From contig OZ116705.1 of assembly GCA_964199315.1 (NCBI GenBank), forward strand, positions 13,268,001-13,332,000: 64,000 nucleotides of DNA. Direction: 5' to 3'. This document shows, one piece after another, positions 28,901-64,000 of this stretch. Origin of the DNA: Orbicella franksi. Taxonomy: Eukaryota. The translations under genes and the position numbers were made by a program. Position 1 is the first letter of the stretch. Every line of letters begins with the position of its first letter. The notes under the pieces are model-generated. The model ran no database searches and was not told where the DNA came from. It worked only from the letters and a program-made list of their open reading frames with translations.

Positions 28901-31900
28901 AATTTCACTAGACACTATTTGATTTCCTATATAACTTCACTGATACCTCCAACAGTATCGAAGTCGACCGAAGGTCTGTTGAACTACTAACTTCAAATGT
29001 GTGTGAAATTACTTACTTAACGATATCCTTTATAACCTACTTTTGAACTGTAGTGTTCGACCCATGTTCCAATTTCAAGTGCCACAATGGAGGAACATGT
29101 GAATCCACATATAATGAACAACGCTGTATTTGCCCAGCCCCATGGGAAGGCCCAACATGTCTACGTAAGAAGTCTATTGGGATTTATTTTCTAAGTATAT
29201 TTTGAACTTTATACTGAAATGTTTACTGTCTTCCTCACTTACGTTTTTTACAGCTAGAGTCAAAATGAATTTGGTCGTGGTAATAGAGCGGTTTTCAATA
29301 GGCCATTTCCGAATTACCTGTAGCCTCTTTCTCAAAGCGCTTCTTGGTTCCCATCATTTCATATGAAACCATTTTCATAGGATTTCATTCACATGCACAT
29401 TAAACTCATTTTCATATGAATGGTTCAGTACCAGACCTCGCTATGATAGAGAGGCTTAAGGCAACTCAGAAATGGGCTATCGAGTGTCATAAAACCAAAA
29501 CCAAACAAAGTTCTCACCAATTAGGCTACTCAGCCAATCTCTAACCGCAGCATAACCATAATCAAAATCAAAGTAATTGTGGTATTACTTTGGATAATCA
29601 ATCAGCAAAACCCCTCTAGCGTGGGCCCAGTGTGTGACCATTCAAACGCAGCCTAAAGTTTGTTGATCAGTGCTAATTTCCTAGTTTGTCTAAACAGAAA
29701 AAAAAACTAGCGCTTTTTACTAATTTTTTTCTTCTTTCTAACGTTTCAGTCGATAATTACTGTTTACCAAAGAACGGCGAAAACAGGAATCCTTGCAAAA
29801 ATAGCGGAAAATGTGAATTCACCAACGGCGAAGTAAAATGTGTTTGTCCAATCCAGTATGAAGGTCCGACTTGCGCAGGTAAACACTTGCAAAACAATCT
29901 CTCTCTGTATGTAGTTGTTGCTGCTGTTTTGTTATTTTATCTAGATAGCCTGATACTCCAAAAAGCGGAAAGCATAGGGTGAACCTTTCGAGGTTACTCA
30001 AACGTTTTCAACATATATTTCCCTTTTGAGACGCAGCGTTTGCCCAATAACCTCATGCAAAAATACGTTTGCTGCGTGATGCTAAACTAAATTGAAGAGC
30101 GCATGTTAAATCTTGTCAGTGCCACCGTTACCACTGCAAAGTTTTCGTCTTGTTATGATGACGTCTTTCAAGGGCTGTGAAGAGCTCTTTCCTAACAACC
30201 TGGAAATGTCTAAACCACTTTCATTTGTGGTGAAAAACGCTCTTGATGGAAAAAGCACGTGGAAAAGAAAGATACACTATTTTAAGGACATTCCATATGG
30301 AAAAAAATATCTATGTCGCTTGCTCGTTTAAATTGCAAATAGAGTAGGCTTAAGTAAGAGATATCCCCACAGGTCAGGATAACTGATGTATTGCATTAAG
30401 TAGAATCAGTCTTGTGCATTATCCTGTATGTTTTTAGATAGTGATGTTATGTTCCTTGGATCTACTTCTCTCCAGAAAACAAATGTAATAAATGCGACAA
30501 ACACGCATTTTGTGATGAGGGAATTTGTAAATGTCGACCCCCTTACACCGGTGACGGAATAACATGCAACGAGCCGGAAGAACTAGGAAGTAAGTTATCA
30601 AATTATAACTTTAAAATACTTGCCATCTCGTTAGACACTTCATCGATGCTACTCGCGGAATTAATATCATGCTCGACTTCAGGAGAGTCGAATCGCCAAC
30701 TCTATAGACCCTTTCCATAAGTGACTTTCAATTTAAAATTACTTTGTATGTATTTAAATTAGCCTCACTAACCTCGTTTGAGAGTAAAAATCATCTAAAT
30801 TATAAATTTTAAAACCTGTTAGTTGTTACTAAAAGTAATTGAGTACTGCACGTTTCATTTCTCGTCGACCCTATCTGCCACATGAAGCTAAAACACTTCA
30901 CGCGGGAATAAGTACTGTTTTTTTGGGTTTCTCAGTAGTGATTTATTCAAATTGACTGACTGATGGATTGATTACTTGCTTGCTTGCTTGATTACAATTT
31001 ACTTTGCAGAGGCCCCAACAACCACGCCCTCTGAACTTCCAAACAGCTGTTCTCCAAACAAATGCTTGAATGGAGCAGCATGCATCGAAGGAAAAAACAC
31101 ATTCTATTGCGTCTGCCCAGAACACACCTCTGGCAGGCTCTGTGAAAAGAAAACTACTCCTACAACTGGTATGAACTGACAGTTTTCATTTTAGTTACTT
31201 CTGATTAGTTAAAACCCGGCGATGGCTAATATCCCATCCATGGGCTAGAACAAATATTCCTATTTATCTAAAAAGACAGAAACTGGCAGAACTCTGTCGG
31301 TAGAAACCACCTGTCCCAACGCAGAGTTTACCTTTTGCGGAGATTGGCAGTTGCGCAAATAACTGTGATTGGACTCCGTTGAATAAAAGTAGCCTTTATA
31401 CATTGTTAGGAGTATCATATTGACTTAAAGCACTACTTAAATCCAGTACAGTTAAGTGCTGGCCTCAATGATTTGCCGTGGTTGTTTCAAAGTTCTCCTC
31501 TGTCCTGTATATTTTCTCTTATAACACAACAGCTCCACCTAAAGCTGCGTGTCATCCAAATCCTTGTCTCAATGGCGGCCTGTGCAAAGAAACAGGAGTC
31601 AACCAGGACTTTGATTGTGTTTGCCCTAATCCTCGGTTTAAAGGAAGGTTTTGTGACGGTAAGTTATGGAATTGCGTGGAGTGAATAAAGAATGTTCAGT
31701 TGGTCAGAGATGAATCGAAAGCATGCATTTCATGTCGATTCATCTCATTTTCAGTACGTACATCTTCAAGACTCCCTATCACATGCTCAGAGTGCAGGGG
31801 TTTGATGAGTGCTGGGTCATAAACAGGACAGGCCCCTTACCTGAATATTTAGGAAATTGAAGGCTTATAAAGTTTCGATGAAATAAGTCCAGGTGGGCTA

Positions 31901-34157
31901 ATCCACCTACAAACTTCAGAATACTCTGGCACCATACTCCGGGACAGGCCCCTTGAGGGCGTGAAGCACCCTTTCTAGCTCCAAAAAGTAACTGCCCGGT
32001 TGTTACGATGGTAGTTATTGTAGGTGTTTCATTACTTATTGGGAAAAGCCCAACCACTTAATTCCACTTATAGGCTTTTTACTTCTAGAGGGCGGTGTTC
32101 AACGACACGAGTCTATATCTATATATGGCAGGGCACCGTTTCCATTAATTATTACTCTTGATTGATTTTTTAAATTGATGCCAAAATTGCTTTTTACTTG
32201 CAGTGGATATGTGTGCTGAATGTGAACCTCATGCAAGATGCATAAATGGAAAATGTTTCTGTCGGAGGGGTTACAAAGGAGATGGATATTCCTGCAGGAG
32301 AGGTATATCGTTTCCTGAAAGACCTTTCCAAATCCAAATATTTTCAATTCTATATCTGTCTTCTCTACATTTTCCACCCCAACCGGTACTACTGCCATTC
32401 GATTCACTGGGGTAAAAGCCGATTTGAAGGGCCTCTACAAACAAAGCAAACAAATGCACACATAAAGAGCTCATCAAAAGGGGTTAGAAAAGGAAGTTTA
32501 TAGACATTTTCACCCTCTTCAGTCCAGTTCAAACGTTTCCCGGCTTCGGAAAGATTGAAGCAAGCCCACTTTTCCCGTTTCTTACCCAAAAATTATGTTA
32601 TTGTGAAAAAAGCTTTAAACTGGGTGCATCTAACTGAAGTGGTGCTCAGGAATAAGAAAATGTTAGGTTTGTTTTTCAGTTAAACCAAAAAATAAATGTC
32701 CGCCGTACTCCACCACAATCAGCGGTGATATCTGTATTTGTAATCCTGGCTATTTCATGAGCAATACTGGAAAACGCGCCTGTATCGGTAAGTAGTCCTA
32801 AATTACTCGAACGGGTTTCTGATGTGAGCAATATGTTACTATGGTTCTGTTCCTAATAGTCTAGAGTTCGTACCTATTTACTCAGTCCATTTTGCTGTAC
32901 CCAAATTCGCAATTAGCCAATTAGAAGCCGTGTCTACTGTCCTGACATCTTGCGATAGTAAGAACTGATATGGCAAGGGGCAAGGATATTATGATTACTA
33001 TCAAGTAAAGGTTTTTTTTTTGGTGGGTAAAATTGATAACAGGTTTAAAAAAACAGGACATTTAAAAGCTTGCAATTTAACGTTTGTATATATCTAACCC
33101 TCAGCGAATGATGATATATCCCGAAAAACATTACAGCATGGGCCAAAGCTTGAAATTCCTCCTCCAGCAGAAAATCCAGTTACACGAAATGGACAACAGT
33201 GGTCAGGTACTGAACTAGAAAGTAAACATCTACCTTATATTACGTTGAAAAACTATTTTGTAAAGTCACTGTTTTCGCATTTCATTTAGCAATCATTCTT
33301 ACAGATGCATTCAACAAAACAAATGCTCTACGTGACAGTTAGCTAGGGACCTTGAAAATAAAATGTCTTGCCACGTTTCGGTGAAATTAATAAGATAGAC
33401 AAATTCAGAATTTTGTATGGGTGAGTTGCCAACCAGCCAAAGCAATATTTGACTGCTTGCGGCTTCCAAGCAGGTAAGTCATTGTCAGTATTTTAAAACT
33501 GTTAAAAGAAAGCGTGCAGTGAAAACTAAACCGTAGAATTCTTGCAAACGCTTACAAATCACTAGGGTAGGAGCAGAATGGTTATATAACAGATATTAAA
33601 TACTGCTTAAGATCGGTAACAAAAATGTTGTACGGAACGTTGAGTAATGAGCACTTGCCGCAGAAAAAGCACGAATAGTGAATGTCGATCTTTTAGTGGA
33701 GATTAAGTACTATTCAATCTGCGGCTACTGTTAGGGGAAGCACATAGACATAGTTAAAGATCGCTATCTACTATTTACTGATTTTAAAGCTTTGATTTCC
33801 AGTCTTTTGTTCCTTATACAATTTTTCCTTTCCCAAACAGAAGACATCATAGTCACAGAATACCGTAGCTTGGGATGCTGGGCTGATACCACTGACTGGC
33901 GAGACCCTTCAAAACGTGCAATGATGGTCATGGAAGGTTTGGATCCACTCCTGGCTGATAATTACCACGAACGGAAGCAACCAATCAGCAAGTGCGCAGA
34001 CGTGGCTAAAAGGCTTGGCCTTAGAGTGTTTGCCATACAAAATGGAGGACAGTGTTTTGGTGGCGCAGACGAAAATACTTACAAAACGTATGGTTCGTCA
34101 GAGAAATGCGCTGATGGAGTTGGGGGATCCTTAGCTAACGATGTATACAAACTCTGA
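21793..34157 (+). CDS. Gene C: secreted Pro/His-rich protein with 14 EGF-like domains, one 4-Cys module and a C-terminal WSC-like domain (about 1137 aa)
   Basis: Exon 1 is 21793-22984 (signal [18 protein letters not shown], donor CCAA|GTGAGT). Phase-1 cassette exons: 23462-23572, 24669-24779, 25552-25662, 25993-26106, 26230-26358, 27266-27406, 27735-27845, 28274-28402, 29054-29164, 29750-29878, 30476-30589, 31010-31168, 31533-31658, 32204-32302, 32680-32787 (4-Cys) and 33105-33206 (linker). Last exon is 33841-34157. All are GT-AG with an open frame. Confidence 0.88.
23831..24455 (-). mobile_element. Penelope-like retroelement 3' fragment (GIY-YIG endonuclease end) with an inverted pLTR-type repeat, in gene C intron 2
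   Basis: ORF 23994-24254 reads [19 protein letters not shown]...[10 protein letters not shown]...[29 protein letters not shown], the GIY-YIG pattern of Penelope-like elements. Positions 23837-24024 and 24266-24452 form an inverted repeat with 3 substitutions and 1 indel. Confidence 0.88.
24946..25192. mobile_element. MITE, 5'-truncated copy of the family at 52831-53156
   Basis: Shares GCTTTTCG.AAACGATGAC..CCCGAGTTTTCCTCAAA..AAATGACCGGT..TTTTCAAATT.CTCCGGCGTAGTG.GGACGGAAAACATT with the 52.8-kb copy. Confidence 0.75.
29284..29620. mobile_element. Nested MITEs in a gene C intron
   Basis: An inner element at 29298-29480 has inverted ends ATAGGCCATTTCCGA and TCAGAAATGGGCTAT. It interrupts an outer repeat that begins TAGAGCGGTTTTCAAT and resumes with CGAGTGTCATAAAACCAAAACC. 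Confidence 0.55.
33841..34157 (+). CDS. Gene C terminal exon: WSC-like (putative carbohydrate-binding) domain
   Basis: YRSLGCWAD...[25 protein letters not shown]...[20 protein letters not shown] has the YxGCxxD...C...A.Q.GxQCF...C...GG...VY pattern of WSC-type domains. Confidence 0.7.
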
Positions 34158-36730
34158 GAAATCATGTACATGTACCTGGAGTCGATCGGTGATGAATACA
34201 CTGACTTGCCAGTCGTCCTAAGCAGGTTTCCAAGAGTTATGAATCGTTCAGTAACAACCTCTGTATCTTAAAAGATTGAGAACGCCTGTCTATATGTGTT
34301 TCATACATAATTTTCGACAATTTGCAATAAGAAGTCGAGACATGCATTTTAAAACATTAGAAATCACCGTTCTGTTTGCTAGCTTGAGTTCCATTGCAAA
34401 TTTAAATAACCTGAGCATGCGCTCGTTTCTCTCCTGCTAGTAATGAAACTGAGCCAGCGAAAACGCTAAAAATACTTACAGTTATTGTAAGGTAATCTAA
34501 TTATACGTTCCAATCCGCATAGGTAAATTTTTTTATAAGGACTGTACAGTGTCCAGGAATGAGAACCCCCTATGTAGACATCAGGCCTAAAAGGGTCAAA
34601 ATGGCGGCTCATCCACGCAAACATATATCATGAACCTTGTTATAAATGTTAAATCGGGTTGGATCTTAAAGCGACATAAATGTTTTAGTTTAAAAAAGCA
34701 ATGGCCCAGTACTATTTTTAGTCTTAGTCTTCATTTATAAGATTAATAAAGGAATTATGCATCATCATGAGTTGTATTTTGTGACAAAACAAGCTGATAT
34801 AACAGAAACTACCAAACAAACAACGATGGGTGAATGGATTTCAAATAGGACGTGCTTAGAGTTCGCGACTCTTTTCTTGCGTTTGAGACAATTTAAAGAG
34901 CAGTGATTTCTGCTTGCTTTGTTACTTTTATTCGGCAATAACCCGAAAGCAATAATGGAATCAAGCAGGTCAATATCAACGACATTGTTGGATAGCGGGA
35001 GACTCCAATTATGCGGCAGACACCCTGAGGAGAAGCTTTCTTGACGGTTTCTATTATATTTACTATTTATAGGCTCATATGACTACATTGATACGTAAAA
35101 AGAAAGCAACCAAAAAAAAAAAAGTATTTTCGACTATACTTCAGCACCAACCTGACTTCTTGTTGTTGTTTATTTGTTTGCTCGTTTTTTTGTGTGTTTG
35201 TTTTTCATTTACAACCTGTAAATATTCGATTTTTTTCGAGGGAGAACATTATAGACTTCATTTCTATACAGTATGATGGATTTGAGCAATAAAGGTCAGA
35301 GAAAAGTGGTCGAAAATGAAAAGCAAATTACTTATCTGGTTCCTGGCATTTAAACTAGAAAAAGAGTCTTTCTTTTGCGATTTTTCACAGGCGAACATTT
35401 TTACCGGCAGAATATATGGCAAGATTGGGGGTTGTTACCCGAAAAAAGGGGGGGGGGGGGGGCTTAAAGGGGTGGGGCATCCATTTCGGGTTTTCGTTTT
35501 AATTCCTTCAGGTACAATTACACTCTCCCAACTATTAACAATATAACAAAATTGATGTGTACAGCAACAATCGCTGTTACATGTGTGCAAACTCCATTGC
35601 GGTCGAATGAAGGCCGTAGGAAACAGTTTAAACAGTTTTTTTTGTCGCTGTCTGTCGACTGCATACAACCCTAAAACCCAGTGAAAAGTTGCGTGGAAAA
35701 TTCCATTATTAGACACTTGAATGCGTAGTGTGGCTGGTTGTATTTGCTTAATCGCTTCATATCCCTGCTTATTTTGACCCTATTTGGTTTCCTTTGTTTT
35801 ACTTGCCATTTTGACATGTGGAAGGAGTGGTTAGTGTTGACATAGGTGATATGGTGATAGAAGTGACAACAATGGAGCAGATCGACAACAAGCATTACAC
35901 AATGTACGTAAATAATATTTCAAAATGTTGCGAACGAGTGGGGCTAAGCGCGTCGAAATTAAGATCATGCAGTCGTGAACAATATACAAAAAAGAACATG
36001 ATCAGGAAAACTTAAAAAGCAATAGGCGAGGCACAGCAGTCACGCCATTCTTGTTGACCTGCCTAATGTGCCACAAGATTCAGTAATATCCATTAGTTGT
36101 CCAAGTTGACAAGCAAAAATCATTTGCAGACACAAATCAAATTAATATGAAGTTTGTTCAAATTACCGTTATTGAGACAATCAATTAGGAAAGAGAAAGT
36201 GAAGTCTAGAGCTTCACCGAGAGTAGGATTTAGTTTAAACATAGACTTATAATTTATTGGATTTAACCTTCAACCGGCAAAAGTGTTTTTCTGACATCTG
36301 CTCCGACTAATTAGGCTTCTTATGACTAAATTTAGCGAATGGCCTATATCGAAATATAAAACCCAGTGACGTTTCCTAAAACGTAGCCAGAGCGCGTTTT
36401 AGGGACAATAAGATATTCGTTGCCTCTACAATTATAAACAAACTCGTTGACCATGAGATCAATATTTGCCGCTATTGTGACGCATTTCTGAGATACTTTG
36501 ATAAAAAAAAAATGTTCTAAAATTGGCCTGTTATGCCTCATTACTTTCCCTGAACATCATGTATGTAGTTATAGATGAATTTTACTTAGGTGCCACTCCA
36601 CTGTAGGAATGGTGTGACTTAACTTGTCAATACTGGATTAGCGGTGATAGATTCCTCAGGTTTAAAGAAGTTGGCGGTTTTTGTAACGGCGTTGCCCATG
36701 AGAGAGATGCAGTGCTCATTACGCAGAAAA

Positions 36731-37644: not shown

Positions 37645-39529
37645 ATGAAAGTTTTTAGGTATTTTGAGCCAGTTTTTCTGTTATGCGTTTTTCAGTTGTT
37701 AGCTGAGTACCCTTGCCAAGGAGAAACGCATCTTGGACAAAGTAATGAAAAATCGTCAGCGAAGAATTCGATTCCAAGAAAGAATGGAAGCAAGAACGTT
37801 CTAGAAAAGGACTTAAATCGCGGAAAGACTCCAGAAAATAAGAGAGAAAACTCCTCTTCGCCAAAAAAGCAACTGGATTCTGCAGGCTCTTCAGAAAATT
37901 ATCATGACCGCAGAGGCTTAAACAAAGAGCACAACATCAGCCACAAGGAAGATGTGCCTTTACACATGGCTGCTAAAGCTGATGACAAATTCAGGAAGCC
38001 ATCTGCTCGGACTCACCAAACTGAAAAATCAAGAGAACATAAAAATAAAAATGTTGCTAATGGGAAAAGCAAAAGGCGGTTAACACACGCTAAGAAGTCA
38101 AAACTGACAAACAACTCTATTCCAGTAAAGCCTGGCGACTTTCATCCGAAGGGAAATACTAAGAGGAAAAAGAAAAAGTTATTTAAAAAGTATGCTTTAG
38201 TTCAAACATTTTCTCCACTTCAGGCGCAGTCTTTAGATTACCAACCGATTGCTACTGGTGGACAAGAAGCTTTAGCGGCAGGGTATTCTCCATTAATTGA
38301 GGGGGACCAAACAGGAGATGTTAAAGACCAGGATCCATCTCAACAGCAACAACCGATCGGTGATGGTAATTCAATATCGCAGTACGATAGCGCAGGGTAT
38401 CAACAAGACAGCAGCCAGTCAGCTATTGCAAGTTTTGTGAGTAATAATGGCGAAGACGTTGGTCAAAGCGAAGGTAGACAGCAGCCTACCAGTCTAGAAC
38501 AGGCCATTCAGTTACAGCAAGAGGCTTACACTCAACAGCCTCAGGAGCAAGGACAAGAACAGGATAATGCGAGACCAGGGACTGAAGGTGGGGAACTGGG
38601 AGGACAGGCAAGTCAGATTATTGACGGAGGGCAATTGCAATACCAGAGCGAAGAAGCAGGTCAAAGTCAACAGCAAGGTGCTCAGGAAGGAGCTCCGGAA
38701 CAAGGTGGAACTCAAACTGGTTTTGATCAAGGGGGATTTCAACAGGGGCAGACACAGGAGCTTAGTCAGCAGCAGTCACAAGGCTTTGATGACCAATTGC
38801 AGCAGCAGCAGCAGGATCAAGCACAGGAATACCAGCAGCAACAGCAGCAACCATCGGAGGAGTCACAAGAGCCGGAGGCTGCGTCCTCTGAAACGCAGAG
38901 TTTCACGACCTCCACCAATTCCCTTGGTAGTCTGTTCGGAACAGAAGGTCAACAGACAACTGCTGAGCAACAAGGACAGGGAACAGTAACATATGCAAAC
39001 GAGCAGCCTAGTGAAGGGGGAGATAAGAGCGCGCCACCCGGCGTTCAATACGCCTCCTCCATCGAAGAAGCGCTTAAAGAGCCTTCAGTGTCCCCACAAG
39101 ACAGCAGCAGCGAAGAAGGTGATGGTCAAGGGAGCCTCGGTGCAAACGATGGTGCCAATGTCATCAATATCGGTGGGGGGCCAGATTCCAGAGAAACCAG
39201 CAACAATGGTTTTATGGGAGCGGGAACTGTAAGTGCTCCCTCTGGGTATCAGACCGCCGCTATAGATGATAACGGGAACAATGACCAAGCTGTGACTGGT
39301 ACAGAAGTCAATGGATATGCTCCAATGAATGACCAGGGTACCAATAGTGACGCAACTGCATTAGAGGAAAATCAACAATCGCAAGGTACCACATCTACAG
39401 ACAATCAAAATTCTTTTAACTTTGCTGGACAGCAATTACAACAGGCAGGCATTGGGGAGAAGATGCCGTCACTCGATGACGATTTTAACAAGATTGTTGA
39501 CATTGCAAACAAGAACGGCCCAATGGCAG
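37645..39529 (+). CDS. Gene D first coding exon: signal peptide, Lys/Arg-rich segment ending KRKKKKLFKK, then a Gln/Gly/Glu/Ser-rich region
   Basis: 631-aa ORF with an abrupt switch from basic to acidic/Gln-rich composition. Confidence 0.9.
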
Positions 39530-42500
39530 GTAAATTGTAACATAAATGTTCTTACTACTCTCTCTATACTAAACATTCGGCGCTTATACAAACCCAAAGC
39601 GAATCTGCATTATGGGACACGTGTTTACCAAACCAGTTTCAATCCATTTAGTTCCCTTGATTACGCGTACCGCAAAACACAGTTTAAAGGTCACAACTTC
39701 TTTTCTGGAAATGAAAATCGCTGGATGACAAGTATATTAGAAAACATTTTAACATTTATTATTGCTGCGCACTTTTACGCGTACATGGATTTTTTTCCTC
39801 AATCGAAAGCTCAATTTGGTTAAAGATGATTTTCGCCTAATCTTTCTTATGCATTAACGCAAGCTTTACAATAACTAACTAATGTAAGAAAATTGTGAAA
39901 TGAATTAAGGTCAATTAAAACTTAATACTCTCAAGAGTTAATGATAAATGACTGTTTCAAACGATGTAAACAGTCGTGAATTGAGTTTTCTTTTGTGGAT
40001 GCGCAGTCAAAGGATGTAAAGGATGTCCTCCTCATGCAAGATGCATAGACAAAGTGTGCATAATCAACGACGACCAACCGCTGGCCCATATGCTGAACGC
40101 TCTGTCTGGTCCGGAACCAGGTATGCATGAACTGTGGTTGAAATTAACTTTACAATTTTCATTAATTACCACACAATCCAGGATTACGTGGCGAAAATCA
40201 TAACATGCATACATACTACATAAACAATACACAACGTTTTTCGGTTCTTATGGCACGCACGCCAGAAAAGAATCTAATGTTGCAAACAGCCAAATAAACT
40301 GGTATACCAGTCCCATTTTTTTCCTGATTCCCTAAAAACCTTCTCGAGGAATGAACGTTTATGTCATTATACTGAAAATGCAACTAAACTAGCTAATTAT
40401 TGCTTAATGGCCTAACATGCAAATATAGTTACTCTGTTTTCCGGGCTTACATTTTGACGTAATTTATTGCATCTTCTACACTTTCATGTACACGTCATCA
40501 TATTTTGGTATTTGAAAAGAATGCCATTTTTCCAGTCTCTAAAATCATGATCAGCTGCATTACTGTTTTTAAAGCTTTGCATATGGTATTATTTCCCAAG
40601 GATATTATATCTTTCAAACACAGAAGAATATTAGGCTCATTTGTTCAGCAAGCCACTTGACTTTCTCCTGATTACTTCAGTATATTTATTATATGACCGG
40701 GGAAATTACTTCATTGCCATTAGCCGGGAGTGAGCATTTTTCTCGCCAGTTTTTAAGTTGCATTGTATTGTATTGCAAATTAATGCAGGTTCGTGATTCT
40801 CATAATTGATTCGCATAACGTATTGGATAGTTCTCACGAATATCAAAGCAATTAAAGCTGCATTTATCTCTAAGAATTGGGGTAAACAACAAGTCAAATA
40901 AATTTTAAAAAATCAATAAAAGCAAAAAACATTTTTGTCAGTGGGGCCCGTACGAATCAAATATTGCACGTTTCTATGTCAGGTGAACAGTCCCCACCCA
41001 GTGAATGTAAAGAATGCCATTACAATGCTAAGTGCATCCAAAGAGAGTGCGTCTGTAAGACGGGTTACACTGGTGATGGATTCGACTGCCGCCGTAAGTA
41101 TTTTCACGCTACCCTTGATTACTCTAAGCATTTCCGATGTAACCTTAAACATGTCGCTTCCAATAATAAATAGTTAAGGCTGGTTTTCACTGACGCGTGA
41201 ACAGAAGAAGAAGATGTTTATAATTCGCGCCGTTTGTTACGAGAATTTTCAAACAAAAGGAAGTACTTAGTAACACCTTTATGCGCATGCGTACGCTGCT
41301 CACGCTTACGCTTGTGCCCAAGTGAAAACCAGACCTTAGTAAAAGCTATTTTCTTTGATACTTCGACTCTTTCGCTTTTAAGCTTTCAGTTTTCCCGGCT
41401 GTTTATTTGTCTAAGTATTATAATTAGTTTTCTGCTGGTTTTCGCTTCAGATTTTTCAAATTTATTTTTATTTTTTTTATCCACAACCATGGAGTAAAAT
41501 TCTGATGCATCGTTTGACCATGCTATTGATTCTTTTTTTTACCAAGAAAAATGGTAAAAAGTGATTAAATCAATAAAGGATAATTGTTCTATATCAGTAA
41601 TTTCCTGGCGTGTGGGATCAAGTATTTCTTAGCATTCACAGTAAGAGGGATATTTATTTTACCAGTTTTTTACTAATCCTACAGCTGACACTTGTTTACC
41701 TGGCTGCAAGCAACATGGAAAATGCATCAAAGGGTTCTGTGTGTGTGATCATCATCATTACTTCAACGGATATGAATGTGCACGTAAGTCCGTCTGCTTA
41801 TTTCTGTCTTTCTCGTCAGCAAGGATCAGAAATCGAGCTTTTATTGATTAAGCTCCTCTTTAAGTCATGGATTCCCGCCTCGTGTAACAGGATGATGGTA
41901 TTGTTCTCTTTATACGTTATACGAGTTGATTTGAAAAAAAAGAAAAAAAGAATATTTCTTGCACACCGTCACCTGGGTATCGGAAATATAGCATCCAGAA
42001 GTCTCCCTTCCTTCGGTGCTGCTCCCCTTGATCCATGTCCGTGCATGTTCTTTGTTATGGCAGAAACAAACACTGTGTTTTTTCTCATTTTTATACACAG
42101 CATACAAGATAACACACAGAAACTGTCCCCTTCAGTGTGCCACGAGATGTCATGACAGATGTCCGCCAAACTGCTGCAAACATCATCGAGTTCTAAAGAT
42201 TCATTACAACGATGGAAATCTTCAGGAGATAAATATACCACCTAATGCACCGCCCCAGAAAAATGTTACTACTCCCCGCCCAACAGTCGTTGTCCTTAAA
42301 CCAGAAGGCAAAGTGAATGAACACGTGGCGAACTTTGCATCTGACTTCCAACAGCGCCCTGCAGACTCTGAATCCACCAACCTAGAAGCTGTGAACTTGA
42401 AAAATCCTGCTGGAGGATTTGCAGTTTCAGAAATGGCAGCAAGACCCCTTATCGAGGACGAGGCAGAATGTCCAGCGCAATGTAAGTCGGAGTGTCGGGA

Positions 42501-44154
42501 TTCCTGCCCTGTTCGATGTTGTCTTGGAAAGTGCCCATTCATTTGCCTGGAAAACTGTCAGCCATCCTGTCCTAAAACATGCTGTCATCTTCCTGGGGCT
42601 AAACACCTGATTCCAATGATGGACCCTCAGGTTCAAGAGAACTTCATGAAAACTATGGCAGAAAAGTTTTGCCCTAGAGCCTGTAAGGCAAAGTGTAATC
42701 CAAACTGCCCGCCAATCTGCTGTGAAGTTAATTCCACTCATCCTGCAACTTCAGAAAGTGTAGATCTTCAGAAACTAAAGGGCGAGAGCAAGAATAGTGC
42801 CGATTTCTTCAGAAATGCAATGAGCTGGTTTGGTATGATGAACTTTTTGAATATGATGTACAACATGTATGGTAATCTGTATGGTACCAAACATTTCGCC
42901 AAATTTCCTGTCAAAGCAAACGATCATAAACTAAAAACAGTTAGCCCTACAAAGCCTAAGACCGTACGCACAGAAAACCACTTTAATATCAAGGAGGTTG
43001 GTGTTGCGGAAAGTCACAACAAAGCAAATGATCTCTGTCCAGATTATTGCAACAAGTCGTGTCTACATATTTGTCCCATGAAATGTTGCCGCGACAAATC
43101 TGAGGGAAAGACGTTAATCAAAGTAGGAAATCCGTTGAAATGCCAACCATCATGTGCGTTGTACTGCTCTAAAACCTGTCCTCCGCTTTGTTGCTCAAAA
43201 AATACCACTTCATCATTAGCAGATCACAATCCAACAGAGCAAATCAAAATTGCAAAGCCTTCACCAGTATCTCAACCTCCTAGAACTCAGGCTCTAGCTA
43301 CCTCTTTACCTAAGCCTCCTGCTGCCTGTACACCCATTTGTCCAGCCTATTGCTATCCAAACTGCTTGGAAAGCTGTTGTCAGAGGGGAGAAGTGACTTC
43401 TAGAAAACTATCACAACAACCAGTAGCACCCGATAAAGCCAAACAGTCATACAACAATTTCTTTGCTAAGGAACCTCCTCTCACCAACCAAGATTGCCCG
43501 TCCGTTTGCCGACGCGACTGCGGGCCATCGTGTCCTTTGCGATGTTGTGGTCGAACGGTGATATCATCAACACCAACACGTTTGGTAGCTACTCGTCCAT
43601 CAATTAATTCACCCCTTTGCCCCGGTGGTTGTGCTTCTGAATGCTTTCCTGCTTGCACGATAAGTTGCTGTAGAGCTGGCTTTAAAAAGGAACATTCGAA
43701 CGCAAACGTTCCAGCAGTTAGTCCAACAAGAAGAGAGCGACAACCGGGTCCAAATCCTCCTTCGTTTCCTCTTCCTCCTCCAGCAGCTGTTTGCCATTCT
43801 GGTTGTTCACGATCTTGTTATCCAAATTGCGACGAGACATGCTGCAGAGCTTATTCAGAGCGTGCTTCTGGATTGTCTGATCTTAACAAGTCGGCTGTCT
43901 CTTCCCATTTTACCATTAAAGTACCATGTCCGTCTGAATGTAGGCCTTTTAACTGCCTTTACTATTGTCATCATGACTGTTGTTTACCACGAAGCAATAC
44001 AGCGGAACTGAAAAAACGTCGCTACCAAGACCAAAGGAAATACTTAAGTGACATGAGAAAGGTAAAAGCACCAGCAAAACCAATGCTGGATAAAAGTACT
44101 GGTGGTCGAATTAGTAACAGGAGGACAGTGATTCATAAGAGACCGACACACTAG
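37645..44154 (+). CDS. Gene D: secreted Gln/Gly-rich protein with one EGF-like domain and 11 minicollagen/NOWA-type cysteine-rich domains (about 1349 aa)
   Basis: Exon 1 is 37645-39529 (signal MKVFRYFEPVFLLCVFQLLAEYPCQG, donor GGCAG|GTAAA). Exon 2 is 40983-41093 (ECKECHYNAKC...CVCKTGYTGDGFDC). Exon 3 is 42101-44154 (acceptor ATACACAG|, stop TAG). Phase-1 junctions join the two long listed ORFs (37645 and 42016) in frame. Confidence 0.85.
41177..41337. mobile_element. Short MITE in gene D intron 2
   Basis: AGGCTGGTTTTCACT at the left end and AGTGAAAACCAGACCT at the right end, with TAA/TTA flanks. Confidence 0.6.
42101..44154 (+). CDS. Gene D terminal exon: array of 11 CxxxCxxxCxxxCxxxCC domains
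   Basis: Ten exact motifs (e.g. CPLQCATRCHDRCPPNCC, CPAQCKSECRDSCPVRCC, CPSVCRRDCGPSCPLRCC) plus one variant with an extra residue (CPSECRPFNCLYYCHHDCC). This spacing is the cnidarian minicollagen/NOWA CRD signature. Confidence 0.92.
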
Positions 44155-50273: not shown

Positions 50274-53200
50274 ATGTTCCAAGACCTGGTCCGTCTCTTG
50301 CTTGTGGTTGTTTTCATTATTTTTGTTCAACAAGGAAGTGCGCGAGATGCTAAACAAAAACATGGCGGCGAAAATAATTCTGCGAAAACAACAAACATCC
50401 CTAAAAACAAGACTCTACACGATAATAACAAGTTCGATAAGAACGCAACAATTCCCAGCAAACGTCTCGGCAAAACGCGGAAAAATCGTGGCTTATCACT
50501 GGCTGCTTTAGCAGGACTTGATCGCGCGGCTCTTGGACTTAACCCTCTGACTGTGCCTTACGGGACAAGGCTCGCGTCCCTAGGCTATCAGCAAGCTCCT
50601 ACTTTGCAACAGCTTCCACAGTACCGAGGGTTAGTCCCGGCCACGGGTGGATTAGTTCAAAACGCTGCAGCGTTGAGGTTACCATATGGACTTCAGCTAG
50701 CCAGGATTTTACCCGTCTTGAATCTTTATCGAAATCGATTGCAATTGCCTGGTCGGTTGCAATTGCCTGGTAATGGAGAAAGCATGGCTACCGATGTTCA
50801 TGTCTACAAAGGTCCTAACCGATTAAAATATGATTCGATTCCACTGAAGCCCGACCTCGAGCAACAGGCGTTAATGAGTAATGGACTCAATCTACCAGCT
50901 TTGCTCCAGTTAAATTCCGCCGGGGATCAGGGTCTGAATGACATGTCAGATGAAAGCGAAGCTGACCTAGAGGAGTTAGGTATGTCATTTCCTTCAAGTT
51001 GTTATTATAACATTCATTTCAAGTGTATAATCTTTGTTTCGACCAATAACTCGGTTTTGTTTCGGCATTTCATCTTCGCAAGATGAGACCATTTGCCGTT
51101 ATTATTAATTAGGTACTTGAGATTTTAAAATATTCAACTGCGCTAAGCGTTGAGCTGGAGAGTGTTTTTCTTTAAAATTATTCTTCAAACATTTGCTTTC
51201 CAATCTACTAATTGAAAAAAGCCACCTTATTAATTCTTTGGTTACATATTTCCTCAACTCCAATACAGCTGCACTTGACAACTCGGACGAGAACCGTTAA
51301 TTGCCTCAATTGCATCGAAGTCAAATTGACTGCTAAAGTCCTCTTACAAAATGTCCTTTGAAGATTTCGCTTACGGACTTCAAGACGATCGCACATAGGA
51401 ACACCATCAACGTATAAAGTTAACTCGGCAAATTCTATTTAGTTCGTGACTGCGTACTTGGCGTTCAAAAATTTCGCAACATTAATGCCTAACTCAGCGA
51501 TGTCGGAGAGTCATTCTCTAGCAATTGGTAAACCTTCCAGTCTAGGGGACATTTAAAATATTCAGTTCAGTGTGATGTTTAATAGCTTTTTCATTTAGAC
51601 AATTAACATTTACCCATGTACCAGTAGTCAATTTACTTTATTGGGTTACAACATTTAATCCCCCTTGGCTTACATGTAAGAATATGTTTAGTGATTGTGG
51701 AGCTTCCACGAGATAATATAGTCGTGAATTTTTTTTTCACCATGCGGTCGATTCTGTATTCCTGTAAAATCTATAATTTTGCAAATCAGCTAAGACAGAC
51801 TGTTTCCGTGTCTGATTCCGTCGCTAAGGGTTTTCATCTCATTTGATCTTAGTTTCATTTAATTTACACTCATGCAGTGGTCTCTTTATTCCCAGCTCTA
51901 AAAATAATATAGTCAAAACGCTCCGTATCAATCTTGGCCTTTATATTTAGGTGAGAAATTATACTGTTTTCGCATAAATATTCTTACGATGAAGATTATT
52001 TTGTCTAGATGGTTACGTCATTTCGAAAACACAGCAAATTTTAGACGGTTGTGAAGCATTACAACTAATCACTACAGCACCAGCAAAATTGCGATGGAAA
52101 CTGTTACGGGTGACTGCTTGTACATTATTTCACTTCCTTCTAAGATGATCCTCTTGTTATGGTACAAAATTTCTAGTTTTTGTTCATGTTCGACAAGTAA
52201 CTGTGAATATATGCTGGTCATGAAACGGCGTTTCGCTAATTGACGGTATTTAATGTACTTAGTCGCGTTAATTTGTCTCGCCTCGGTGGCATATCACGCT
52301 TCGCTTTGTGTCACCATTGTCCATGGCCAAACCAAACCAAGCATCCCAAAATTGCTGTATTAGGTCAAAATGTGTCAGGTTCAATGCTCCGCCCATTTCG
52401 ATATGGTTTTGCACTCGATATTTTTGTTTTTTGCAGTTAGGAAATGAATTATTTCAGGTTAGACTTCCTATTAAATTACCATAAGTGCTGTTGTTGTGAG
52501 TGTAGCGAAACAACCGTTGAATTTTATCGCTTTTGCAATCGGTAGTGGAGATACATTACATGCGTAGTGCAACAGGTAGTACTTTTGGCGCGAAAATTGG
52601 GTGACTTCTTTTCTTTTAACATCTCTCAATTTACGCTCGATGAGAATCCGATCCAACTTAAGCTTTTTCGATGCAAGCTTTATTTTGTTATTGCGTTGTT
52701 TGAAAAAAAAAAAAAAAATCAGAGATGTTGTGAAACGTGTGTCCTTTTGGTCAAAATGTCCGCGAAATTGTAGAATTAGTAGGATTAGCAGCGGCCGGAT
52801 TCAAAGAGGTGTTTCAGAGTTTATAGATTACCGTCCACACTAATCCGTCTAGCAAACGGTGCTTTTCGAAAACGCTTTTCAAACCGGAGTAATTTAAATA
52901 CGCCGGCTTCAGTTTTCAGTGTACATGTGAGCGGAAAACAGTTTGAACATTTTGAAAACAGAGCTTTTCGAAAACGATGACATCACAATACTCATGTGAT
53001 TTCATTGCCCGAGTTTTCCTCAAAAACAAATACAAAATGACCGGTAGTTGTTACGTTTTCAAATTTCTCCGGCGTAGTGTGGACGGAAAACATTCGATGC
53101 ATTTTCAGAGTGAAAACACCGTTTTCAGATTTCTCCGGATTAGTGTGGACGGGGCCAAGATGTTTCTAAGTATTGTTCGAGGATTAAAGCCTGTTGTTAT

Positions 53201-56200
53201 GAAACAATGTTTAGGATGCACTTGGAGAGTTTCGTAAATTCAGCCCCAGCTCAGTAGCGTGGGGTTATGGAGGCTCAGAACGACTGAACGATATTAGTGA
53301 CTTCTATTAAGCCTCGGAATTTAATCAGTTGGAATGCTCTACTGAAATAGCACTGGTTGATACAAATATTCCTACATTTAAAGTTTGCATTAATTCCTTG
53401 TCTTGAGGCAAACGTTGTCATATTTTGGAAACATAAAATGTTGCGAAGACAACATGGTAGAACCGCAGAAGAAAGATATAGTACCTGAAACATCGTCTCA
53501 ATCAGATGTGCGCAACTTAGGCAATATCGAAATACAGCCTGAACTCATGCAGCTTGCATGTTATTCGAACTGATGATCTGCTGAGTGTTGGGAGGAAAGA
53601 TAAAATAGTCCTCCAGACATGATCTCTCATTAACAACTGTAATGAAATCTTGGTGATTACTTTTAGGTGGAGTTTGTTTAACAAACCCTTGTCACAACGG
53701 AGGATCTTGCGTAAATGTCGGCGAAACGTTTGAATGTATTTGCCGAAAAGGATTTACTGGAAAGAAGTGTAAAGGTGAGTATTCCATATTTCAGAATGCC
53801 TTATTTATTTATTTTTCTTTTTTGCATGCCTATAGCAAACATGCGTTAGTGCAAGAACATGGAAAAGGTATAGACAATGTATACATACTTTTCTCGGAAT
53901 AATTTACACTTATTGAGCATTTGTTTCCTTTCAAGAATTAAGTAGGAAAATTATACCAAATTGGCTAGTAAACAATTGCTCTGCCCAATTCTTTTGTCAG
54001 CCCTTCCTTGTCCGTGGTGACAGTGACAAGAGATAACGAAATCAAACAAACAAACAAACAAACAAACAAACAAACTTCCAACAAAATTATATTTCAGGCC
54101 GCGTTCTAGAGATCTATTGTAGTTAATAAGCTACAAATACGCCCTCGACCAGTCTGCCTTTTGGGATTCCAAAGCGAGATTGGTGTTAATTAACAAATTC
54201 AGATTTCTTGTACGACAAGGCGTTTCAAAAAACTTACAGTGCAAATATGAGACCAAATAAAATTCGTCCAGCGTGGTCTTCAAGCCTGCGTTTTACGGAA
54301 AACACAATGCAAAAAGCCAAGGCTTGGACAAGAACTGGTCGTCCTCACTTTTACGTGTAAAATACAATAAAAAAATCATTCCTAAGATTACTCATCCACA
54401 CCACATGTAACACTATCGCTCAGTAAAATCTTAGTATGATCGCATTCATTCGATTCAATAAAGATGTCTTGCTGTGAAATAATTGTGATGCTATGTTTGA
54501 TAGAGGGATTTAAATATCTCTTTTGGGCGAGTACCCAGTTTAGAATATAGGCAAAGACACTTGTGAACAATAATGCAATAACAGCGTCAATTGGTATGGA
54601 TCACAAATCCAAAACAAAACAGAAGTTCAGAAGCTTGATGCATTTAATCGAAGATTGTATGAATTTCTTTGTCGAGATATTTGAGTTGCCTGATCCACAA
54701 GGCTACGAGCCTCCTAACAAAAAAGTGACTATTAACAGTCTCAAGAAAACCTGACAACATCGCAAATAAAAGCAATGACAACCACAACGTGGAGCTGGAT
54801 GAACAACTCCTAAATTAAGGGCTCTTGCCTGAACAAAACCACACAATATCATAAACAACACGCAAAACAGTCCACAGACTTGCGCTTGAACATCTACATT
54901 TGCAGTTCCAGAACGAACAAACTGGAAGGACAAAACGCTCGATGAAATGACAAGAAACATAAGAACGTCTCTTTAAGACAGACTCATAGCTTTCAACAAG
55001 GAAAGCTACAGCTATCTCTGGCGAAGCCGGACAAAGATAAATATGACACCCGTGATAAGAAGCAGCATAACTTGCAACAGTTAATCAAACTGCCGGGCCC
55101 GGCGTAATAATACAAAAGGCAAGTAACCAACACGTTCACGGAATATTTAAAACTTGGTCCCTCCAGAGCTAATATTTAGAGAGCTTAAATCATATCTTGC
55201 AATACAAATGAGCCAATAACAACTAGCACGTGGCAAATAACAGAGGTGTCGAACTCTACAAATTACACGCGGATAACAGTGGAAACCACGCAGACCTATG
55301 ACCTCTAACGGCTCTACTCTGGTGAAATGTCCTTCTAAAAACAGGATTATTGCTTAGCGAAATATTCAAAGATCCCCCTATCGTACCACACGAAGGGAGC
55401 AGAACCTCAAAGATGTACTAGTTCGAGCAAAACTCTCAAAGCGGCTATTACACGTGGATAGGAGTTGTGTAAGCCTGTTACCCCATTGTTATCAGTGAAG
55501 AAGGTGTATTACCGATAAAATATAATAATTTTCAGAAATAATTTTAAGATTCTTATAAAGTTTCTTCTTGCTGAAGAGAAGCCAAATTTAATTGGGGCAA
55601 CATACCATCAAGTGAGACGCAAGATCTCGCTTCCCCACTTTTGTGACTGATGTTTACGATTTTGTTCACATTTAAAACAGATCGAGCCCAAGAAGTCTGA
55701 ATAAACGTGGTTCCAAAAACTTTTCGTGAGAGCTAATCTTTAAAACGCTACGGTTGACCCTATTTAATCAATAATTTATATTTTACTAATAGAATTTGAC
55801 TAAAAATTACATTAAAACTAGGACTGTGCACAATGTGCACAGAAACCCAAATTCCTCTTAAAAAAAGTCAGATTTTCCCAGACATTTTTCCATCAAAAAC
55901 ATAATTATTTCTATATATATCATCAGTTACAGTACTACATTGATTTTATTTAATTACAGACAAACATTATGTAGGAAGAATGTAAAATTATACGGGGTCA
56001 TGACTACTTTTAAAATTCCTCGTAGGTTGGTTGCGGCAACTATCGATATAGAGAAAATATCCTTATATTGAACTTTTGTGACAAACATAAATCCCAAATT
56101 ATATCTTTTATTTTTTCTGTTTGTTTGTTTGTTTGTTTTTTAGTTGGTTTTGTTTGTTTTTTCAATGTGATAAAAAGTAAACTTTCCTCCGTAACGCAGC

Positions 56201-59200
56201 CTGACTGTTGTTGGTTGTTAAACTGTTTATGGTCGAACACTTTTTATTTGGTTTCTGCATTTACAAGTATAAGCTTATTTTGTTATGTCATTGTTTTTGT
56301 ATCACTTAATATTTTACGGCATTTTCGAACCAAATGTTATGAAAAGATATCGAAATTGCATTGCGAAAGAGGCAATGAAATTTGCTCAATGACTTGTATC
56401 TTTAATTGGAGGAGTTTGTGCCATAACTAGCCAAAACAGTAGTATACCTGTCAATGAAACATGCAAAATTTACCGTGTGAACCAAAAAGAAAGTAGTAAC
56501 ATCACGTTTGAATTCGGATTGGTTGAAAATAAAGAGTCTTTTGGCCTTAAAAGTTTTTGGTCACACGGCGCACGATTGGACCAATCAAATGCCAGAGACC
56601 GTGAACTGTCAGAGCGGAGACAATTCATGACTACGACCACCCGCTTCGACCATCCGCTGTGATGACTTTCAAATAAAGGGGCGGTCATTCACCCGTTTTA
56701 ATGAAACAGAAGGGTCGTTCTTAGCCCCTGAGGTAATCATAAAAGTTCAGTGAACAAACATGTGGCATGGCAAGTGTTTAGACCTCCGTATCAACAAGTT
56801 CCTCTGTCCTTGCCAAAATTACATGCTTCAGAGATTTTGTGTTGGTTTTGGTATAGTCAATGTACCTATGTAGCGAATTCGATGTTTCTCGTGGGCGTTT
56901 TCCTGCTTACGAAAGTGTTGTTGGTATCTTCTCAATTCTCTTTGATGCTTCCTTCCCATGGCGATTCAGAAAGAAACCCATGTTTACCTAATCCATGTCA
57001 CAACGACGCACAGTGTACAGTTTCAGGATCAAGTTTCGATTGCTCGTGTTCCATTGGTTGGAAGGGTGAAAGATGCGAAGGTAGGTACTGAAGAAGTTTC
57101 AACCGAGACTTTGAAAAAATAATAAAACTACCTAGGAAAAGCTTGGACAACTTTCGTTACCTTTTTGTTCTGTCTACGTTTTAAGATATGGATGTTTATA
57201 AATATGGATGGCATGTCTATTCGAAACAAACAAAATTCTTCTGTGTGGGTGATTAAAATTCTTCTGGTAAGAACGTTTAGGGAACAGGTCGGTGACCCGC
57301 AGTCATTCCCAGCCAACCACCCAGGAGGCCTTAGGCGACATCATTGTTTCATTCAATGTTTTTGTTTGTTCCATGGATGGCAATTTTGTCTTTGTCTTTC
57401 CAAACACCTGGTTTATTTGAATAGTAACAGGTGGAAGTCAAACTATGGGGTTAGCTGAATTAGCCAGGTTCAAAAATAAACACCAGGCCATGCCATGCTT
57501 TATACGGAGAACGATATACTACCCGCAAGTTTGTGAGAAAAAATATTGAATGGTCATAAAAATATGTATTTGGAAATAAAGCTCTGATCCTACCTTGCTA
57601 TTATTCCGGAGTTCAACTGCTCTAGTCTCGCTGAAGTAAGCGATTTTCTCCAGGTACCTAATGTAGTTTAATGGTCTTACTGAGCCCTTTTTTCTCATAA
57701 AAGAGGACTTATATGGATAGACCCCAACCATCATTAGTCACACTGGATTAGAGAATACTTGAATACTTGCAACGAATGTATAATTAGACTATATACAACT
57801 TACATGAATTAAAACAAATATTTACAAACTTACTCTAACTGTGAATTACTTAAGTGCCATCGAACTTTGTCCTCTAACCTAAAATAATTCCTTTGGCTTT
57901 TTGGAAGTTTTCTTTTGCGCTTGAATAACTGTGACAGGGAATTGTAGATCCAACCATTCCAACCATTAAGCATACTTCTCATTCCCTGTAGAACCCAACA
58001 AGTGTCATCCAAATCCATGTATGAATGGAGGATCTTGCACAGAATTACAGTTTGACTATGAATGCACCTGTCCCCATGGATTTCATGGGAAAAGTTGTGA
58101 AGGTTTGAGATGTTCAAACGTTAGCTCTTTATGTTTCAAGTTCCAACCACTTAAAAGTCCTCACGTCGAAAGCTTTAGACGATAATTTATAAACATTACT
58201 TTTAGAATGAACCTTCTAAAACATTGGCAGCTCTAGACCAACTCGGAGAGACTTTCCGTGTTCTTAGATGTCACATTGTATTTACGTTCCATATTCCAGC
58301 GTATCAATTCGTTTAGCCGTTTGCAGTGGTTAACTCATTATCTTTGATCAGCAATTATCTGTTTGTTTGATGTTTCATTTGTTGAGTCCCCTCAATGATT
58401 AAGTTATACTACCGTATTTCGTCAATCTAGATTTTGATCAAAATCAGTTTTACTGTGACACGTTTAATTTCTTTTTTGTGTAGATTTTGGTTTGACAGGC
58501 CACTGTTTTCTTTTTTACGCTTTCCATTGGCGACTTGGTCAGATATCATCACGAAAAGCGATCTATACGAGTATAACTTGAGAGTAGCCATGTTAAAAAA
58601 AAAAAAAAATTATATGTATAGATTTGCTCTAAGAATAAACTATCAAAGTTAATCAAACTAATTGATCCCCAATACCTTTTAGAAAAAAGAACGAGCTGTT
58701 CTCAAAATCCGTGTCTTAACGACGGCCACTGTATTGAGGCAGCATCTGGGAGCTTCGAGTGCGTATGTAAACCTGGCTTCTCTGGGACGACATGTGCAGG
58801 TAAAATAACTTACTTTCAACAGCCATTTCTTTACTATTCGAAAATATTCATTGGTAAAAATTGCTATAGCAATAATACACTCTCAAGATTATGTGACGTT
58901 ATCGAGGTGCCCTAGGGAACAAACGTTATCTTGAATTCAACCGAACTCACTGTCCTAGAAAATACAAGAAAATTTCTGCGAACACAGGAAGACACGATAT
59001 TTTCCAAAAGTTCATCGAACGGTCAACATTGGAAAACAAGCGTTTTCGTGAATTCACGCGATTTTGCCGTCAGGGAAAATGAAAGAAAAGCACAGAAAAA
59101 AAAAAAAAATTCTGGTAAACAGTGTGTTTTGCGAAATTTAACGGAATTTGCCGTTCTGGAAAACAAGGGAAAACGCCGGTTTTCAACTGTTAACCCCGGA

Positions 59201-63869: not shown

Positions 63870-64000
63870 GTGTGTCTGTGGTTTTAGAATGGCGCCTTGC
63901 ATACACTATGTGCTATAAACTGTATAATCAATCAATTATTTGGCAATCAAATTTTTTACTTAACATGCAACGCATCGTTAGGTGGGTATAGTAGTTACTT

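Follow-up and report, generated by a model that had tools for sequence, protein, structure and literature searches.

The 64,000-nucleotide stretch of Orbicella franksi DNA analysed here (GenBank assembly GCA_964199315.1, contig OZ116705.1, positions 13,268,001 to 13,332,000 of the forward strand), hereafter called the window, contains a gene designated gene D, located between two genes encoding epidermal growth factor (EGF) repeats. Judging from the sequence, gene D is one real gene, composed of five exons and not three, and represents, in Orbicella, a gene conserved among hexacorals. It is already annotated in Orbicella faveolata (LOC110041566), but unnamed. Its product carries eleven cysteine-rich domains (CRDs), the largest array of stinging-capsule cross-linking domains that we found described, and probably contributes to the construction of stinging organelles as a component specific to hexacorals. 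The coding exons are as follows.

37645..39529, + strand: coding exon 1, amino acids 1-628 and the first base of codon 629; donor CAG/GTAAAT.
40007..40120, + strand: exon 2, 38 amino acids, absent from RefSeq isoform X2; phase 1-1; half-EGF with four cysteines and conserved linker INDDQPLAHMLNALSGPEP.
40983..41093, + strand: exon 3, six-cysteine EGF whose best Pfam match is EGF_3, under the gathering score; phase 1-1.
41685..41783, + strand: exon 4, 33 amino acids; six-cysteine EGF-like module with an HHHYFNG motif; phase 1-1.
42101..44154, + strand: exon 5, encoding the CRD array, the Met-rich motif and the basic tail, and ending in the stop codon.

An earlier note on this DNA had joined two long open reading frames (ORFs), 37645-39540 and 42016-44154, both of which are present in the window, through a single EGF exon. 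Their assignment to one gene was borne out by the RefSeq models of Orbicella, Oculina, Stylophora, Nematostella and Actinia, where the two are joined. The four junctions are canonical as well (CAG/GTAAAT at 39529, CAG/ before 40983, /GTAAGT after 41093 and CAG/ before 42101), all of them in phase 1, and the three-exon join provides an open frame of 1349 amino acids. Two conserved exons were nevertheless left out. The Stylophora and Actinia models display additional conserved sequence between the Gln-rich part and the CRDs, and a tblastn search with these RefSeq proteins (P0010 and P0021, respectively) placed two extra exons in the window, at 40007-40120 and 41685-41783, with AG/GT borders and phase 1-1. 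Since both are of phase 1-1, their omission keeps the frame, and the three-exon join therefore looked right. The corrected model illustrates that in-frame joins of symmetric phase-1 exons can appear sound while conserved exons are skipped.

The product of the five-exon model is 1420 amino acids long and differs from O. faveolata XP_020602527.1 (LOC110041566 isoform X1, "uncharacterized") by 5 substitutions and no indel. At the DNA level, 20.5 kb of the window align to the O. faveolata scaffold MZGG01000798.1 at 99.4% identity. RefSeq isoform X2 of the same gene (1382 amino acids) equals X1 minus exactly exon 2, and the 39529/40983 junction of the earlier note is therefore the X2 junction. The 41093/42101 junction, in which exon 4 is skipped, fared less well: it was seen only in an older Stylophora model (P0011), which is chimeric with the upstream gene. 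No deposited model uses both junctions. The X1/X2 pair, with exon 2 (40007-40120) skipped in X2, is annotated in both Orbicella faveolata and Oculina patagonica, which suggests conserved alternative splicing of the half-EGF/linker module. Exons 3, 4 and 5 are 91%, 97% and 92% identical, without gaps, to a genomic contig from another coral (L002). Most intron sequence aligns to the same contig at 76-78% identity with gaps, the exception being the 25 bases adjoining the exon 4 donor. No spliced transcript contig of gene D was found among the Logan contigs (L002, L003), which are collinear with the window. As those carrying the last exon are unspliced coral genomic DNA, the splicing of gene D is documented by the RefSeq models and by conservation.

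The CRDs, all encoded by exon 5, are located as follows.

42124..42177, + strand: CRD 1, exact pattern.
42469..42522, + strand: CRD 2, exact pattern.
42532..42585, + strand: CRD 3, Ile4/Pro11/Pro14, C-CRD-type determinants; 3 residues after CRD 2.
42670..42723, + strand: CRD 4, FCPxxCxxKCxxxCPPICC; conserved as far as sea anemones.
43036..43089, + strand: CRD 5, exact pattern.
43141..43194, + strand: CRD 6, exact pattern.
43327..43380, + strand: CRD 7, exact pattern.
43495..43548, + strand: CRD 8, Val4/Pro11/Pro14; best single PDB match 2HM6, a NOWA CRD entry.
43618..43671, + strand: CRD 9, Gly4 and no Pro14, like the wild-type NOWA N-type CRD.
43792..43845, + strand: CRD 10, Gly4 and no Pro14.
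43927..43983, + strand: variant CRD 11, C-3-C-4-C-3-C-3-CC, CPxECRP[FY]NCLxYCHHxCC; best conserved CRD across the family.

The count of eleven given previously was confirmed: ten domains match CX3CX3CX3CX3CC exactly and one is a variant with a longer, 4-residue second loop (CPSECRPFNCLYYCHHDCC). In 20,000 shuffles of the exon-5 protein, the exact pattern occurred 0.0003 times on average, against the 10 observed. The pattern was not found elsewhere in the window in any of the six frames, and the protein has no N-terminal CRD. The domains are separated by spacers of 3-104 amino acids, and the array contains 12% Pro.

By their sequence, these domains are genuine minicollagen/NOWA-type CRDs. Searched with exon 5, the PDB yielded four NOWA CRD entries and no other match; all six cysteines stay in register. 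A profile built on the ten canonical CRDs and compared to 177,635 PDB sequences ranked NOWA 2HM4, 2HM6, 2HM3 and 2NX7 and minicollagen 1SP7 and 1SOP as the top six, with a best E value of 1.7e-5 and 2HM4/2HM6 at about 2e-5. The CX3CX3CX3CX3CC domains of minicollagens polymerise via an exchange of intramolecular for intermolecular disulfides (PMC4863159). According to Tursch et al., the N-CRD fold gives way to the C-CRD fold, which is multivalent and more reactive, when position 4 is Val or Ile and position 14 is Pro. By this two-site rule, CRDs 3 and 8 look to have the full C-type determinants and CRDs 9 and 10 look N-type-like; Pro14 is present in 7 of the 10 canonical CRDs.

From its N-terminus, the protein consists of a putative signal peptide, a basic block, an acidic Gln/Gly block, a three-exon EGF module, the CRD array with an internal, nearly invariant Met/aromatic motif and a basic tail. 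The parts other than the EGF exons and CRDs are listed below.

37645..37722, + strand: putative signal peptide, amino acids 1-26, hydrophobic core PVFLLCVFQLLA; read by eye; kept in Oculina.
37723..38214, + strand: basic Lys-rich block, amino acids 27-190; K 19%, net charge +25; KSKRR and KRKKKK sites.
38215..39528, + strand: acidic Gln/Gly/Ser/Glu-rich block, amino acids 191-628; non-repetitive, presumably disordered; no Cys.
42808..42873, + strand: Met/aromatic motif FRNAMSWFGMMNFLNMMYNMYG, inside the CRD array; first 20 residues identical in Nematostella.
43987..44151, + strand: basic tail, starting near LKKRR; last 55 residues, net charge +13.

The composition noted earlier for the basic segment, the Gln/Gly/Ser/Glu block and the basic tail was thus recovered, with net charges of +25, -56 and +13, respectively; the CRD array and tail together carry +39. 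Within the acidic block, Q amounts to 19%, G to 13%, S to 10% and E to 8%, and only 4 Met are present. The TRF program detected no tandem repeats there other than a short CAG run and a 2.5-copy unit of 12 nt, and neither G.GQQ matches nor cysteines occur in amino acids 191-628. The basic N-terminal block with its dibasic sites might be a propeptide, as in cnidoin. Secretion and the lack of a collagen helix, both proposed previously, agree with the translation: behind the putative signal peptide the highest 19-residue hydropathy is 1.05, too low for a membrane span, and no Gly-X-Y run of at least 4 exists in the 1420 amino acids. The FRNAMSWFGMMNFLNMMYNMYG motif is predicted to be helical at low confidence, and its hydrophobicity is also too low for a membrane span.

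Where a single EGF had been described, three EGF-like exons were found (exons 2, 3 and 4), with four cysteines in exon 2 and six in each of exons 3 and 4. A Pfam scan of exon 3 returned EGF_3 with an E value of 4.2e-5 (24.1 bits versus a cut-off of 28.5) and EGF (20.2 versus 21.5). No family was matched by exons 1 and 5, and no SCP/CAP or lectin domain was detected in any of these three exons. An AlphaFold2 model of amino acids 625-1000, obtained from a 29-row alignment, has a mean predicted local distance difference test (pLDDT) score of 44; it displays beta hairpins at the EGF exons, with a pLDDT of only 50-63.

The search for the combined Gln-rich, EGF and CRD architecture advocated in the earlier note was productive. 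The whole architecture is common to Oculina, Stylophora, Nematostella, Actinia and one much more distant relative, in which EGF exons likewise lie upstream of the CRD exon. The orthologues include LOC110041566 (O. faveolata), LOC144666027 (Oculina), LOC111347648 (Stylophora) and LOC116613828 (Nematostella). The Nematostella protein XP_032230174.2 (1348 amino acids) shows the complete layout: a classical signal peptide at the equivalent position (read by eye), basic block, acidic Gln/Gly block, three EGF-like modules, CRD array and terminal variant. Exon 2 is identical at 36-37 of 38 positions among corals (36/38 in Stylophora) and at 25-28 of 38 in comparison with anemones. The corresponding figures for exon 4 are 33/33 (100% in Stylophora and Oculina) and 23-25/33. 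The FRNAMSWFGMMNFLNMMYNM motif is identical in Nematostella, and CRD 4 and the terminal variant CRD are well conserved in the full alignment. The Gln-rich block has kept its composition but not its sequence, with 97 of 390 aligned residues identical to Nematostella. Anemone orthologues possess fewer CRDs (5-6 exact). The family is small, amounting to 15 clusters among 1.84 billion representatives, and all of its named members are scleractinian or actiniarian. The RefSeq orthologue of Montipora capricornis (P0093, 836 amino acids) is automatically named 'probable serine/threonine-protein kinase fhkB', presumably because of the Gln-rich block, and stops after the second CRD; it looks like a misnamed and truncated annotation.

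Conservation extends to the position of the gene. The Nematostella orthologue is flanked by two EGF-repeat genes whose exons are collinear with those of the upstream (30475-34157) and downstream (50577-58104) genes of the window. As the flanks are collinear on both sides, a three-gene block has been conserved from stony coral to sea anemone, that is, across Scleractinia and Actiniaria. In the window, the upstream gene (21772-34160, + strand) opens with a large low-complexity exon (21772-22995) that encodes a signal peptide, a basic stretch and Pro-rich sequence; numerous phase-compatible EGF exons come after it. The last exons of this gene line up, in the same order, with the gene that precedes the Nematostella orthologue (L004:232-6819), at a protein identity of up to 73%. 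The downstream gene (50274-63900, + strand) begins with an exon encoding a signal peptide and low-complexity sequence (50274-51086), continues as a run of EGF exons and shares collinearity with the gene that follows the orthologue in Nematostella (L004:24000-30500). The neighbours share with gene D phase 1-1 EGF exons of the C..C...A.C....C.C..GY.GDG..C type (27749-27841, 30469-30567 and 32212-32298), but they have many EGF repeats and no CRD. The suggestion that gene D ties the EGF cluster to cnidocyst biology found no support here; the flanking genes are ordinary EGF-repeat genes in old synteny with it.

NOWA is the nematocyst outer wall antigen of Hydra, with four NvNOWA paralogues in Nematostella. 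It is a C-type lectin with C-terminal CRDs that forms disulfide-linked oligomers through 8 CRDs, a number called unusually high (PMC10014300). Gene D resembles it in being secreted (putatively), collagen-free and highly multivalent, with a C-terminal tandem array of minicollagen-type CRDs whose closest PDB relatives are those of NOWA. It differs by the lack of a C-type lectin domain in the Pfam scan, in place of which it has basic and acidic low-complexity blocks and the three-exon EGF module, and by its 11 CRDs with long spacers of 3-104 amino acids and a Met/aromatic motif within the array.

The second comparison concerns cnidoin, the Hydra nematocyst elastomer, which contains a highly repetitive, Met/Cys-rich elastic domain of QMQGCGQQXP/GXGQQ type with a CRD at each end (PMC4321713); the CRDs of cnidoin therefore flank this domain and are not confined to the C-terminus, as the earlier note had stated. 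In gene D, too, CRDs occur together with a Gln/Gly-rich region in a single secreted chain, which also possesses a long basic N-terminal segment. Its block is nevertheless acidic, non-repetitive and Cys-free, in contrast to the hydrophobic domain of cnidoin, and all of its CRDs are C-terminal. The analogy with cnidoin fails on every defining feature tested.

Minicollagens were defined here by a central Gly-X-Y helix of about 12-16 repeats, polyproline flanks and one CRD at each end. They and the Nematostella 'minicollagen-like' proteins share CX3CX3CX3CX3CC with gene D, some of whose CRDs have the C-CRD residues at positions 4 and 14; gene D lacks the Gly-X-Y helix and the terminal one-plus-one CRDs, and its chain is far longer. 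CPP-1 (cnidarian proline-rich protein 1, Hydra) also carries CRDs. It is described as a collagen-free capsule-wall protein (PMC6910907). Gene D is similarly collagen-free with a Pro-rich CRD array, whereas CPP-1 is a short polyproline protein that lacks both an EGF module and an acidic block and whose CRDs form no long array. Functionally, gene D is best called a new architectural variant among the collagen-free CRD proteins NOWA, cnidoin and CPP-1. No paper describing the gene D family was found in the literature.

On these grounds, we consider it rather likely that gene D encodes a secreted, collagen-free, multi-CRD structural protein of cnidocysts. The cnidocyst role is inferred from the CRDs, the sole basis of the assignment. 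The gene would be expressed in cnidocytes, and the protein would enter the secretory pathway and, in developing stinging cells, reach the post-Golgi cnidocyst vesicle, with internal disulfides initially closing each of the 11 six-cysteine CRDs. As the capsule or tubule matures, these would give way to intermolecular disulfides that link the CRDs to minicollagens and further CRD proteins, so that one chain would become a high-valency covalent node of the wall or tubule network, as NOWA does with its 8 CRDs. With 11 CRDs on one secreted chain, such a node is the best-supported mechanism. Among the remaining parts, the acidic Gln/Gly block would be a disordered, charged spacer between basic blocks and not an elastomer of the cnidoin type. 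The flanking basic blocks may, speculatively, neutralise it or bind capsule-matrix polyanions, and the strongly conserved EGF module and the Met/aromatic motif probably serve for specific docking or self-association.

Several observations weigh against this assignment. No expression, proteomic or localisation evidence was found for gene D or any orthologue in the searchable literature: accession and LOC searches gave no match, no identifier that could be mapped to the family was present in the supplements of the Nematostella matrisome, Stylophora cell atlas and cnidocyte transcriptome papers, and the 2025-2026 cnidocyte preprints examined contain no mention of such a protein. The deposited names are all 'uncharacterized' or automatic, Pfam recognises nothing beyond the weak EGF matches, the AlphaFold model is of low confidence, and Pro11 is absent in 4 of the 10 canonical CRDs. 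The position between ordinary EGF-repeat genes could equally fit a general extracellular-matrix role. Separately, NVE17236, a 'highly derived NOWA homolog', was considered as an orthologue of gene D and ruled out, being annotated with a C-type lectin.

In the main rival explanation, gene D would be unrelated to cnidocysts: its product would serve the epithelium or mesoglea as an extracellular-matrix component of general type, a mucus protein or an adhesive, cross-linked through cysteine repeats of CX3C type. The lack of expression evidence linking it to cnidocytes, its place in an old conserved block between two EGF-repeat genes and its EGF modules, which are typical of matrix proteins, are all compatible with this proposal, and the language-model search of the ESM Atlas returned only nematode C_tripleX cysteine-repeat look-alikes, at a sub-threshold score of 0.74 that makes them a lead only. 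Pfam C_tripleX is nevertheless unmatched at E<=1, the repeats match by sequence only NOWA and minicollagen CRDs among solved structures, and in the cited literature the CRD is described only in nematocyst proteins (PMC4321713, PMC4863159, PMC10014300). We therefore regard a matrix protein as unlikely, although deserving serious consideration.

A more elaborate version of the cnidocyst hypothesis is conceivable but quite doubtful. Gene D would be a hexacoral-only invention for a hexacoral-only organelle, the spirocyst, or for a hexacoral nematocyst subtype, and would act as a charge-patterned scaffold in which the basic (+25), acidic (-56) and basic array and tail (+39) segments drive condensation in the cnidocyst vesicle. 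The Met/aromatic helix and EGF module would then align the chains, the 11 mixed N-/C-type CRDs would lock the condensate covalently, and the three-gene block would represent a co-regulated cnidogenesis locus.

The earlier note had called the protein a multivalent elastic cross-linker. A multivalent disulfide cross-linker seems the most reasonable reading of the sequence; the elastic half, with a Gln/Gly block that would take up mechanical energy and give it back as in cnidoin, appears improbable. The block is indeed 19% Gln and 13% Gly, probably disordered, and in the same chain as CRDs. It has, however, no GxGQQ or QMQGCGQQXP motif, no Cys, only 4 Met and no cnidoin-type repeats, its net charge is -56 where cnidoin is hydrophobic, and its sequence is poorly conserved. 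In addition, given the absence of an N-terminal CRD, it would be anchored at one end only. Finally, that the N-terminal and CRD ORFs are separate genes or transcripts is scarcely credible and was rejected: gene callers do give the last exon alone on unspliced contigs and the Montipora model does end early, but even that truncated model runs from exon 1 into the CRD array, the RefSeq joins and in-phase canonical junctions concur, and no alternative start with a signal peptide lies ahead of exon 5.

As a candidate structural protein of cnidocysts, gene D bears on a broader problem. The walls and tubules of cnidocysts rank with the toughest biological materials known. To our knowledge, CRD-bearing components of these structures have been characterised in only a few cases, namely minicollagens, NOWA, cnidoin and CPP-1, and always in Hydra. 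The gene D family adds a conserved anthozoan architecture with 11 CRDs, compared to the 8 of NOWA, and three strongly constrained non-CRD elements. It offers a candidate explanation for why anthozoan capsules differ from hydrozoan ones, or spirocysts from nematocysts, and the Nematostella orthologue LOC116613828, together with the genetic tools available in that species, makes it directly testable.

A few other features of the window may be mentioned. Its sole run of N, 135 bases at 12196-12330, is far from gene D. An ORF of 686 amino acids at 4905-6965 (+ strand) is extremely Pro-rich, with VP(Y/F)PVPVPSPPK-like repeats, and belongs to no Pfam family. A single-exon ORF of 414 amino acids at 17769-19013 (+ strand) matches the rhodopsin-family seven-transmembrane profile PF00001 above the cut-off (E 5.7e-15) and is, by this match, an intronless G protein-coupled receptor gene within the EGF-gene cluster.

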